A stretch of DNA of 64,000 bases from Oculina patagonica (Eukaryota), in NCBI RefSeq assembly GCF_052425735.1, contig NC_135765.1, positions 27,838,001 to 27,902,000 on the forward strand, given 5' to 3'. The notes beneath the pieces were generated by a model. That model saw nothing but the letters and a program-made list of their open reading frames with translations, did not search any database and was not told the origin of the DNA. Made by a program: the position numbers and the translations under genes. Each line of letters opens with the position of its first letter. The first letter of the stretch is position 1. Below, in pieces: positions 34,255 through 45,700 of this stretch.

Positions 34255-35049
34255 TTAATTAAAGTTACACTAAATTAACAGAACTAATATAAAAGGCGTT
34301 TAATGGCAGACAGTAAGTTTTGAAATTTTACTCTGAACTGAACACACCCGCCTATCGTATAAAGATCCTATCTGCGTAAAAAACTGTGAAAACTTTGGTT
34401 ACAAGCACGCGTTTAATCACTTTAATAAAGGGCATGTAGGTGTTTGAAGGTCAACTTGTGTGCATTGTACTGATCAACAAAATGAGAACATTTCTTTCTA
34501 TGTATTCCTGACTATATATAGTAGATTTATCTTTCAATTAAAACAAACCTCAGTTTCCTAAAGTTTTGAATCCGTCACACGGCACGACGAAGTGAATTTT
34601 GAAATAGAAATCAGAGCAAACACTATACAGCAAGATGGCTTATATTCTTGGATACCAAACGCTTGTTATGAATCTTTTTATTCAAGTTGGACTTCTATGG
34701 TTTTATCTCCCAACTGTGAACACTCGCGTTATTTCGTGCCAACCGCGTGACGGGACAAGCGGTAGCGTTACCACCGTTATTCTGCGCGTTAAACGCTTCC
34801 AGAATATCTCTGTCAATTTCCGTCGAAACAAACCTCGTCTGCTATCGACTGTACATCACACTATACCAAATGACGGGAAAATGCATTTCTTTGACTACAA
34901 CGTCAAGGCGAAGTTTTACGGACGGGAATTATGCGTCTCAACTGTGAAAGAAACAGTGTTGAACGAGAAAGGAGCTGGCGAAAATAGACAATATTCTTGC
35001 GAACGCGTGTGTCTTGGCGTTGGCGATCGCGTGAATCTGGTAACTAACT

Positions 35050-35435
35050 TGTTACACAGCCCAAGTGCTATGTAGTGATTCAAAGTCAAATTTAACGTCA
35101 AAAACTCAGAACTTTTAATACATGATACGATCCAGGTTTCAAGATTACACTCTAACAATCCAGGTTCAGTTCAGGCATACCAACTATAGTTCAGGTTTTC
35201 TACAAATACAAATATGAACTAGTAAACATAGGAAACGAATCGAAGTACATGTAGATACATTTTGCAAATAATATGACTCTTACCGACTGTTTCGTTAGGT
35301 CCAAAATGTTCAACAAGGTAAAGAAATAAAAACAACATGGCGAATCCAAGCGAGAACAACGCACATGGTTGTTCACGTGATGCAAATTCGTGACGTAATA
35401 TAGGTCCGCACAACATGCACGCAATGGTAGCTACA
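35050..35435 (-). repeat. 3' LTR
   Basis: Direct repeat of 42388-42773; tgttaca..ctaca ends. Confidence 0.95.
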
Positions 35436-35719
35436 CCGGCCCCTAAATGAACATTCTAGAAATAGTTTCATTTACACCATACTTATCAGCTAACGTTGCG
35501 AACTTAAACATCCTTATTTTAGGTAAATACACAGTTCTTTGTTCGTCAATAAAACACAACTTTAAATGTCATTAAGTGGTGTCCACTCGTTGTTGTCCAC
35601 TCGTGATTGACAGGATGAGTATACAAAGTTTGATCCATGTTAACCGCAACTTTACAATGTCCAGCATACATGTCAAATGCATCATACTTGAAGGAAATGT
35701 TCCTGACAGTACAAATTGC

Positions 35720-42294: not shown

Positions 42295-42387
42295 CCGTAA
42301 ACACAACAAATCGTTTCGCCGTTCGCATTCCACACAATCCACCAAATTTCCAATTCCGATAATTTCCAAGGCGAAGTAGTCGAAAAC

Positions 42388-42773
42388 TGTTACACAGCCC
42401 AAGTGCTATGTAGTGATTCAAAGTCAAATTTAACGTCAAAAACTCAGAACTTTTAATACATGATACGATCCAGGTTTCAAGATTACACTCTAACAATCCA
42501 GGTTCAGTTCAGGCATACCAACTATAGTTCAGGTTTTCTACAAATACAAATATGAACTAGTAAACATAGGAAACGAATCGAAGTACATGTAGATACATTT
42601 TGCAAATAATATGACTCTTACCGACTGTTTCGTTAGGTCCAAAATGTTCAACAAGGTAAAGAAATAAAAACAACATGGCGAATCCAAGCGAGAACAACGC
42701 ACATGGTTGGTCACGTGATGCAAATTCGTGACGTAATATAGGTCCGCACAACATGCACGCAATGGTAGCTACA
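42388..42773 (-). repeat. 5' LTR
   Basis: Direct repeat of 35050-35435. Confidence 0.95.
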
Positions 42774-45700
42774 TAACTCGTCCTCTGGTGGTCGCTTGTG
42801 GCCTGGGAAAGGTTGTTGTGTGTGGAGACGAGATACATATTTGCAGCTGAGCCTAATGACTGAGGGCCCACGGTGTTTAAAATGCCAGGGTAGGGGATGC
42901 CTACAAGATCACGTGACAACAACGCAGTGTCCTCCTGGTGATAAATGCTTTGCCATTACGTTGAACAAACAGTACAGTGCTGCAGCAACAAACTCAAGGT
43001 GGGTAGTAGGATCTTGTGATAACGAAGCCTCTAGCAAATACTTCAAATTTCCTTTGCGTTTCTAAATTTAATTTCAATTTTAAACGGCGTTTTCATACTG
43101 GGATTGATAGAAGGGCAGGGGGGGGGGCAGCAGGAAAGGGGATTGGGGGAGTGTCTATTCAGCACAATTTTTTCCGGTGTTATCCGAGCAACACTGCTTT
43201 GTCAAAAGACGGATTAAGGAATGCGATTATAGTAAAGTTAAACGTCCTTTGAGGCTGGCTCTTAAACTCCTGCCCGCTTTATTTTATCTAACCTTTATTA
43301 ACATGTTTTTCTTTTTTTTTTTTTCAGCATCCTACCAATCATGCTTGGTTGCTCCAGTGATGACGGACTGCGAGGTTACTCGTGCAAGGATGGATGTCGA
43401 CGAGAGGTGGAACTCGTGGGGTCTGGGAAGAGACGTGTTTGCGTCCGCTGTTGCACTGGGAACGAGTGTAACAAAATAGGAGGAGCCAAAGATAATGAGA
43501 CTGAAACCGCTGTCATCGGAGCTGGCGCCCGCGATACTGTTGAATTAGAAACTAGTGGAGTGTCTGAGGTCACAAGCGATAAACGATTTGTAATGATCTC
43601 CTTATTCTGGACCCTTTGGCTATTAAGAAGAAGGGTGGACTTGTAATCTTAGCTTAGCTTATACTTCTCTTTTGCGCATGTAAACTCTGGAAACTTTCAG
43701 AGACATTTGTTATATATTGGCACACTAGGATATACAGCTATTTTAGTTAACGTTGTCCGGATTAAAGCTAAAAGACAAGACTGAAAGGCAGTATGGGTAG
43801 AAGAAGAGAGCAACTGCGCGTGCTGAATACAAAAATATATCGTGACATGACAAACGCGAAATTGCATGTTTTCTATTTATTCAGACATGTGAAACAAGGT
43901 GCTTTTAGTCACACTGAATTTTAGAAGAGTTTTTCAAAGTCAGAGCTAAGCAACAGTGAAAGTAAAGCTACAGAAAGGCCTCCTGATAAGAAAAACAAAC
44001 TCTTGAATTCTCCACGTGCGAAATACAAATTTGTGCATTTAATGAAACTTATATGCAAATTTGTAGTGAATACCCAGAACACCATACGGTATTGCCTTTT
44101 AGCTTTAAGCTTTGACCCGACAACGTTTATTGAAATAGCTGTATATCTACAATTGTAAAATATAATGTAAAATTTGAACTCAATATTTAAGCCTGTAAAT
44201 AATTGTATTACGAAGAGTCTTACGTCAAGTTGCCTCAATAGCCCTTCAGAGCCGTTTTGATATTTTGACTTCTGGCGGAAGTACAGTGGACTTTCGGTAT
44301 AAGTCCGATGTTAACAACCTAAGAAGAGGATTGAGGTAAATGATCTATTCTTATAGTGACTCCACGATTCAATCGCGATTTTAAGAGATCAGTGACTGTA
44401 AATAAAAGGGATTTAAATATTTATTAATTTGTCATACATGTTTTATTTAAATTGTGATATACATTTACCTATTCAGTACATATTATGTTAACACAATGTA
44501 GAGAGCTTGTTATTTAAATAGTTGCAATTTTTAAAATAAAATCAATTATCAGAACACTGCATTTTATTCTACTTATATTTCAGTCTTGTCATATTTATAA
44601 AGACGGACGTTAAGAATGGAATTTATGTGGTTCAGACAGCTTTAGGAAGGGCTCTTTCAACTTTCTTTTGAACCAAGTTATTTTCCGTTTTGTGTTGTTC
44701 GGTGGACCATAGGGTACCTCGTCGCCATAACGAGCGACCTGTCGTGTTTTGCCTTTCATCTGCCGTGCCATACAAGGGCTTTTGGTTCCAGTACTTCGGG
44801 CTTGAAGTGGGCCTGGGTCCTAGTAATCCACTGTACTACTTCTTACAGGGCTCGTTTGTTTCAAATATGTCAAATTAAAAGTCAAATTAAGTTTACACTA
44901 CCAAGCAGCAAAAAGCTTGGGACCCGAGATACACTAGCCCTATAGAGATCCACATTTGGGACTCTTATCAAAGTGTTCCAGTAGTTAGTGGAACGCTCTC
45001 TTTTGCCCCCTTGATAGTCGTCGCATCTCATTTTCCATTGACCCAAGTCAGAGCGAATTCGCCGAGCAATAATCGGAAGTTTATATTTATCGGTCGTTGT
45101 TCTGATGTCTCTCGGCAAACTGGCGAGCGTCATCATACTCCTCTATGGTTTTCTTTCTCTTTTCTTGCTCTGCTGTCAACTGTTGTTTGTTGGGAAGTCC
45201 GTTAGCCTTTCGTTTCTTTGACTGCGACCTACGGAAGGCTATCATCCCCGCTAAAGACCTCCCTCCTCTAGAAGCGGACCTCTCGCACCGTACGCAGTTC
45301 ACCTCATGGGGATCGCCATAATTACCCGTCAGCGGGTAATTATGGTTAAGAGATTGCTTGAATATTCTGCTTTTTGTTTATTTGAAAATTACTCCCTCAT
45401 CTTCCAGTTCTTATACATTGAGCACCTGCTTTTACTTTCAGTCGCAAAGCCAAAAACAAAGCTTTCACATCTGGCCAATCACAGCAACGGAAATAATGCA
45501 ATGAACCAATCAAAACTCCAAACAAAAACACGCGAATGGTGCTAAGCGTGGGAAAATATGAAAACGCGCGAAAGTAAGCGCGGGAAAAAGGTAGAAAGGC
45601 GAAAAAACATGCATAAGCCACCCCAAAACTAGTATGTGCTTTTTCTCTAGATTGGTTAAAAAAAACAATGTGTTTGCTCTAATTTGTGAGTTGAATTTGT

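Follow-up and report, generated by a model that had tools for sequence, protein, structure and literature searches.

We examined a 64,000-nucleotide stretch of the genome of the coral Oculina patagonica (G000:C8:27838001-27902000, hereafter the window; all window positions are counted from its first letter). It contains a gene that is interrupted in its first exon by a BEL/Pao element with long terminal repeats (LTRs). The reading that we favour, and hold to be probable, is that this gene encodes a Hexacorallia-restricted surface glycoprotein, probably anchored by glycosylphosphatidylinositol (GPI), in which an unclassified beta head is followed by a three-finger domain, and that the window copy has been made null by the young BEL/Pao insertion.

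A gene interrupted by a young BEL/Pao element

Removal of the element (35050-42773) together with one copy of TAACT, and splicing of 42999-43327, gave a single frame of 317 codons plus a stop codon, made of coding pieces of 415, 220, and 319 nt and ending at 43646. The frame that starts at 34635 is open to 35049 and resumes at 42779 (...VNLVTN, then SSSGGRLWPGKGCCVW...), and reading across the removed insertion gives ...VNLVTN joined to SSSGGRLWPGKGCC.... A preliminary description of this DNA had proposed a hidden open reading frame (ORF) of 317 amino acids (aa) with no other lesion once the element is excised and the intron spliced, and every structural statement in it was reproduced. The reconstructed sequence bears out the signal peptide and contains all of the motifs quoted there, the 12 Cys, the CCTGNECN ending, the stalk, and the FVMISLFWTLWLL tail (Table 1).

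Three independent controls, namely an uninterrupted copy of the gene, annotated orthologues, and a contig from another sequencing run, show that the reconstructed frame is not due to chance or to an artefact of reading. The uninterrupted copy is about 95% identical to the window copy in the first part of exon 1 and 97% identical over the coding sequence, and its exon 1 is one open 221-codon frame that runs straight through the empty target site GTAACTAACTCGTCC. The orthologues begin with the same MAY.... The 766-nt contig comes from run X1, which has the species label 'organism A' and is guessed to be RNA; it links the three exon pieces and lacks both the intron and the LTR element. After 49 nt of the first part of exon 1 it continues with 42774-42998 and passes directly to exon 2, whose alignment spans 43334-43731. 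Six letters of the contig fall between these two blocks and agree with 43328-43333, positions that lie in a stretch skipped as a repeat. No reads from a polyA raw-read run (X24) fell on the exons. Because a single exon encodes the N-terminal domain together with Cys 1-5 of the second domain, the fusion of the two domains cannot be explained by an error in a gene model. The claim that one ORF holds both domains is borne out by the paralogue and the orthologues, where they are also joined within one exon.

The inserted element is 7,724 bp long and antisense to the host gene. It has an LTR pair, a target-site duplication, gag, and a pol with Pao-type aspartic peptidase, reverse transcriptase (RT), and integrase. 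With its 386-bp TG...CA LTRs, 5-bp duplication, DUF1759 gag, and Pao A17/RT/integrase pol, it is an ordinary young member of the BEL/Pao elements. The knockout by a fresh insertion that had been proposed agrees with LTRs identical at 385 of 386 positions, two open ORFs, the TAACT duplication, and the empty site in the paralogue. The insertion is far younger than the gene duplication, since the LTRs differ at 1/386 positions and the two gene copies have a synonymous divergence (dS) of 0.084. There are at least 10 further LTR pairs in the genome, about 7.3 kb apart and 92-99% identical to the window LTR, and LTR depth in other sequencing runs is 30-80 times that of flanking unique DNA. Because of this, we conclude that the family is abundant and recently active in this genome.

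Read without excision, the frame stays open for 8 codons of the LTR and meets a stop codon at 35073-35075, leaving a 146-aa ORF. This truncation removes half of strand 7 of the N-terminal domain, strand 8, an invariant CC, and everything downstream. Because the end of this domain and all that follows it are lost, we infer that the window copy is a null allele in the reference assembly, with loss of function as the consequence. The element would have integrated antisense in exon 1, within predicted strand 7, leaving the 5-bp TAACT duplication. In all three other runs examined, contigs join the first part of exon 1 straight to the second. Among the contigs displayed from these three runs none bridged from LTR to exon, and Logan contigs break at repeats. 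The empty-site contigs may derive from the other gene copy, and the haplotypes of these runs are mosaics of both copies. With the empty site as an internal control, the locus is a clean case of an exon disrupted very recently by an active BEL/Pao family, and the presence or absence of the insertion could be used as a marker in populations of O. patagonica.

Table 1. Parts of the interrupted gene and of the inserted element (window positions)
Feature	Position	Strand	Remarks
Exon 1, first part	34635..35049	+	Start codon (MAYILGYQTLV-MNLF...), signal peptide, predicted N-terminal domain strands 1 to mid-7, to insertion site
Predicted N-terminal beta domain, first part	34725..35049	+	Mature protein begins after ...PTVNT; rest of domain at 42779-42864
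Target-site duplication TAACT, left copy	35045..35049	.	Empty site present in paralogue
LTR, 386 bp, TG...CA	35050..35435	-	3' LTR in the element's own orientation; 385/386 identical to other LTR
pol ORF, 1556 aa, open	35720..40390	-	Peptidase_A17 (Pao, E 9e-47), RVT_1, Integrase_H2C2, rve, DUF5641
gag-like ORF, 714 aa, open	40258..42402	-	DUF1759; 133-nt overlap with pol
LTR, 386 bp	42388..42773	-	5' LTR in the element's own orientation
Target-site duplication TAACT, right copy	42774..42778	.	Matches left copy
Exon 1, second part	42779..42998	+	End of N-terminal domain (to 42864, with invariant CC); predicted three-finger Cys 1-5 from 42865
Intron	42999..43327	+	GT...AG, phase 2, within predicted three-finger domain; junction ...ATNS/SILPIMLGC..., in orthologue proteins TNS/SILPIMLGC; record 4 of run X1 lacks the intron
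Exon 2	43328..43646	+	Last seven predicted three-finger Cys ending CCTGNECN (to 43472), then stalk, tail, RRRVDL, stop
Stalk	43473-43586	+	Asn/Ser/Thr/Gly/acidic, with NET sequon
Hydrophobic tail FVMISLFWTLWLL	43587-43625	+	13 residues; then RRRVDL and stop

An uninterrupted copy upstream of the window

The uninterrupted copy lies at G000:C8:27827084-27828532, 45.5 kb upstream of the window copy. The duplication spans roughly 7 kb or more with 81-95% identity, and there are no N gaps between the copies. Comparison of 304 whole codons revealed 17 synonymous and 7 non-synonymous differences, corresponding to the dS of 0.084 given above and a non-synonymous divergence (dN) of 0.010. Because dN/dS is 0.12, both copies have been under purifying selection after duplication. 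A scan of the O. patagonica genome found no copies beyond these two tandem ones. The NCBI model for the upstream copy (P0014) is N-terminally truncated.

An alternative is that the two copies are divergent haplotypes of one locus, an inserted and an empty allele, that were set in tandem by the assembler. In each of the three other runs, only one type of contig is seen at most diagnostic exon positions; with haplotypes that are mosaics of the two assembly copies, every empty-site contig could stem from one locus. However, the sequence from one copy to the other has no gaps and includes about 37 kb of non-duplicated DNA, and the intron structure of the copies differs by about 200 bp. A non-coding identity of only 81-95%, with several indels, and a dS of 0.084 also represent a high divergence for alleles. 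In addition, run X3 carries the window-type intron, and run X2 has a loose end at 43106, the continuation of which was not compared with the paralogue intron. We consider this explanation quite unlikely and treat the copies as tandem duplicates.

The copies differ at two further places. A single-copy stretch of 205 bp that ends about 50 bp before the ATG in the upstream copy is absent from the window copy (34579-34585 versus L002:1219-1421). Because a related contig (P0001) also encodes part of this stretch, the difference is probably a promoter-proximal deletion in the window copy. At 43735-44144, 88 nt past the stop codon, the window copy has an insertion of about 410 bp with inverted ends (CAGCTATTT...AAATAGCTG) and a TA duplication. 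This insertion is absent from the upstream copy and from the contigs of runs X1 and X2, and depth rises several-hundred-fold at its edge in DNA runs. It looks like a miniature inverted-repeat transposable element of the Stowaway/Tc1-mariner type.

The C-terminal domain has a predicted three-finger fold

Judged by its predicted structure and Cys pattern, the C-terminal domain is a divergent 12-Cys three-finger domain of the Ly6/uPAR (LU) type that lies outside Pfam UPAR_LY6 by score. It has the Cys framework of LU domains, with a CxxC start, 8-10 or more Cys, and a CCxxxxCN end. Among family members, down to 23% identity, the 12 Cys and the final Asn show little or no variation, and the domain closes with CCxGxxCN (here CCTGNECN). 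The model from AlphaFold 2 (AF2) has a three-finger fold, with a predicted local distance difference test score (pLDDT) of 77 and a predicted template modelling score (pTM) of 0.70. In Foldseek searches with this model, all 50 of the 50 rows listed from the PDB were three-finger proteins (uPAR, ActRII, GPIHBP1, Lypd6b, C4.4A, BMPRII, TGFbRII, PSCA, and neurotoxins), as were 30/30 of those listed from Swiss-Prot (Bouncer, SPACA4, Ly6G6c, and others). The E-values of these matches were weak (0.04-0.7), which is usual for such small domains.

Searches by sequence gave less. There was no match to Pfam UPAR_LY6 (PF00021) among the members checked, and a profile of the C-terminal domain searched against PDB sequences returned only neurotoxins and TEX101, with E around 1. 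Activin_recp was the sole recurring Pfam family; it was found in 4/15 members with E between 0.012 and 8.6, below the 20.9-bit cut-off but with the whole profile covered. The preliminary description had named a Ly6/uPAR domain and proposed a Foldseek check of its model. That check returned a three-finger fold with exclusively three-finger matches listed, and the 12 Cys and the CCTGNECN ending also stand, whereas a match to Pfam UPAR_LY6 is lacking.

The closest parallels are GPI-anchored Ly6/uPAR proteins such as uPAR, C4.4A/LYPD3, TEX101, GPIHBP1, PSCA, and LYPD6, which include the top structural neighbours of the modelled domain. Common to these and the coral protein are a signal peptide, a predicted three-finger domain ending in CCxxxxCN, a Ser/Thr-rich stalk, and a short C-terminal hydrophobic signal. 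By comparison, the partner module in the coral protein is an unclassified 6-Cys beta domain rather than a second LU domain or an acidic tail, and its LU domain has 12 Cys, whereas theirs have 8-10, and misses Pfam UPAR_LY6. The ectodomains of activin, BMP, and TGF-beta receptors are a second parallel. Activin_recp is in the same three-finger clan, and ActRII, BMPRII, and TGFbRII were among the structural matches. Finger 3 has an extra Cys pair ahead of the CC, an arrangement that would resemble the ActRII disulfide pattern. However, the coral domain scores below the gathering cut-off, its CxxC...C first-finger loop is Ly6-like and not receptor-like, and the protein lacks the transmembrane helix and Ser/Thr kinase of these receptors, with 6 residues left after the 13-residue tail.

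The N-terminal domain remains unclassified

The N-terminal domain has about 137 aa with six conserved Cys and an N-glycosylation sequon (NIS). In the preliminary description it was taken for a TNF/C1q-like domain, that is, a jelly-roll head, possibly trimeric, fused to the LU domain. There is a loose motif likeness (IPNDGKMHFFDYNV, LGVGDRVNL, and TYLQLSL), the composition is beta-rich, and the size is near 130 aa. However, these motif residues are not kept in distant family members, Nematostella among them. No Pfam family matched the domain in the window pieces, full-length orthologues, or 15 family members. For TNF (PF00229) and C1q (PF00386) there was no match at E<=10 with the window pieces or the full-length orthologues, and the 15 members gave none at E<=1, nor any at the looser E<=10. 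A 25-sequence profile of the domain was compared with 1.84 billion representative proteins. This returned only 17 matches, all family members or weak look-alikes, with no C1q or TNF protein among them, and the same profile found nothing relevant among PDB sequences. A search of the O. patagonica genome for C1q (PF00386) had no match, but the controls likewise gave none, which makes that search uninformative.

The AF2 model of this domain, built on 25 closely related sequences, has a pLDDT of 86.5 (the five models range from 56 to 86.5) and a pTM of 0.76. Its eight strands, against the ten of a jelly roll, comprise six long ones (11-14 residues) and two that are short, connected by loops of 3-11 residues. 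From the model we infer that the strands run up and down in antiparallel order and do not form a jelly roll; an up-and-down register would set C71 opposite C97 in the hairpin of strands 5 and 6. No TNF or C1q chain was among the matches listed from Foldseek-PDB, AFDB clusters, VIA-align (an exhaustive scan of 48,161 PDB representative chains), ESM Atlas, or BFVD. In the PDB, Foldseek gave a best E of 2e-3 and template modelling (TM) scores of 0.2-0.36. Matches in AFDB clusters were bacterial secretin-like sheets with TM below 0.5, and the ESM Atlas fold search gave secretins with TM of 0.5-0.59. Only noise came from the BFVD viral fold library, and an ESM-Atlas feature search with the domain had no usable match.

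Together, the Pfam and profile searches, the eight-strand model with its short loops, and the five fold searches make a TNF/C1q-type head very improbable. The Foldseek check of the modelled domain for a jelly roll had been named beforehand as the result on which that identity would stand or fall, and the predicted fold is not a jelly roll. A predicted C1q+LU protein has already been reported in molluscs (PMC13719153), so that such a fusion, which the preliminary description did not know from characterised proteins, would have had a precedent. The coral protein shares with it, and with the TNF/C1q superfamily, the general idea of a beta-rich extracellular head joined to an LU domain, but the coral head has no similarity to these proteins in sequence or predicted fold. 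The TNF/C1q innovation of the first reading is thus not delivered. We leave the domain unclassified, matching no known family.

Proposed product and membrane anchoring

The product that we propose would have, in order, a signal peptide, a disulfide-bonded all-beta domain, the 12-Cys three-finger domain, a glycosylatable Ser/Thr/Asn-rich stalk, and a 13-residue hydrophobic tail. A layout of signal peptide, disulfide-rich domains, stalk, and short hydrophobic end is typical of GPI-anchored Ly6/uPAR surface glycoproteins. Because of this likeness, we lean towards a GPI-anchored surface protein. A signal peptide, a small-residue site, a polar spacer, and a hydrophobic end can be read in the sequence and are kept by most members. 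In the close orthologues the hydrophobic end has 13 residues, and no more than 8 residues follow it; an uncharged run of 11-16 residues lies no more than 9 residues from the C-terminus in 13 of the 15 proteins checked.

The protein might otherwise be a single-pass membrane protein or a secreted, toxin-like three-finger protein. A distant member, P0037, has a long hydrophobic span and a cytoplasmic tail, the Oculina tail is followed by six residues, and secreted toxins exist among three-finger proteins. Set against this, most other full-length members checked end 0-9 residues after the 11-16-residue uncharged stretch (9 in P0030), a stretch that is too short for a membrane span plus tail and is preceded by small residues and a polar spacer. 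The conserved hydrophobic C-terminus speaks against simple secretion, and the stalk and tail are laid out as in GPI-anchored C4.4A, PSCA, and GPIHBP1, which are also structural neighbours. We regard the non-GPI alternatives as unlikely. The possible GPI anchor of the preliminary description is therefore kept in part: the stalk and short hydrophobic tail fit a GPI signal, but the RRRVDL that follows is unusual for one.

In the GPI-anchored protein that we favour, the beta domain would form the binding head, distal to the membrane, and the LU domain would add a further module for binding or regulation. The role of the protein, judged by analogy with uPAR, C4.4A, GPIHBP1, and LYPD6-type proteins, could be that of a receptor, co-receptor, or recognition molecule, which we put forward tentatively. 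A bolder proposal is that the 6-Cys beta domain has a new extracellular fold specific to Hexacorallia, that it serves a lineage-specific GPI-anchored receptor as its ligand-binding head and maybe also exists as an independent module, and that the insertion is a segregating presence/absence knockout. We think this rather unlikely as a whole.

Several points count against our reading of the gene and its product. Besides the RRRVDL ending, the spread among the N-terminal domain models, and the weak Foldseek E-values, no Pfam LU model reaches its cut-off, so that the assignment to the LU type depends on the predicted structure and the pattern of Cys. The X1 contig is a mosaic of window-like and paralogue-like letters that cannot be assigned to either copy, and its RNA status is only a guess. 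On the contig data, the insertion may be fixed, heterozygous, or private to the sequenced colony. In addition, the upstream copy has a 2-bp insertion (AA) that shifts the conserved first ATG (MAY...) out of frame (L002:1474-1512; G000:C8, about 27827057-27827095). The MAY... start becomes a 12-codon upstream ORF with a stop that overlaps the next ATG (MNLF...), and this internal ATG is the likely start of the upstream copy. Both assembly copies thus carry a lesion, and the state of the gene in the sequenced individual is uncertain.

Family and distribution

Annotated orthologues with the same domain order and splice product occur in Desmophyllum pertusum (P0008, 328 aa), Montipora capricornis (P0024), and Acropora millepora (P0026, LOC114969902). 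Distant members with 23-34% identity to P0008 keep the N-terminal domain, LU domain, stalk, and hydrophobic C-terminus; these are P0030, P0033, P0034 (Nematostella vectensis XP_032226885.2), P0035, P0036 (with Montipora cluster members), P0037, and P0038, of which P0037 has a true membrane span and a cytoplasmic tail. Orthologues that join both domains in one ORF, as the preliminary description had anticipated, are therefore present in Desmophyllum, Montipora, Acropora, and distant relatives including Nematostella. All named source organisms are Scleractinia or Actiniaria, and a second profile search (15-member full-length alignment, 5.8 billion proteins) found no further named taxa. The best reading of these sequences is that the family is restricted to Hexacorallia as far as the searches reach. 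The orthologue identifiers were also sought in the literature, with no result.

A 2026 survey of invertebrate three-finger proteins counted about 43 per cnidarian genome (PMC13719153). It tabulates cnidarian architectures as LU-only or receptor-kinase and describes one cnidarian Kunitz+LU protein; the combination of an orphan beta domain with a 12-Cys LU domain is absent from its descriptions (PMC13719153). Because the LU part of the coral family scores below every Pfam cut-off, LU surveys based on hidden Markov models would probably miss it. The family would add an architecture of orphan beta domain and 12-Cys LU domain to the three-finger (Ly6/uPAR) repertoire. It is small and conserved from stony corals to Nematostella, which makes the orphan domain open to study in a tractable model.

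Two proteins from ENA metagenome contigs (P0040 and P0041; L007:2001-2978) have two tandem weak matches to the N-terminal domain (E 4e-4) and a GPI-like tail but no LU domain. They hint that the orphan beta domain may be a mobile module.

Other features of the window

Long ORFs of 479 and 484 aa with weak NHL-repeat matches lie at 6415-7854 and 60349-61803. Three further long ORFs have no Pfam match (13985-16168 on the minus strand, 24042-25706, and 53163-54956). A segment of about 0.3-0.6 kb is repeated with 73-90% identity at 51598-52251 and 57776-58393, and it occurs once upstream of the window, at positions 18457-19430 of G000:C8:27818001-27838000 (L005/L006 joined).

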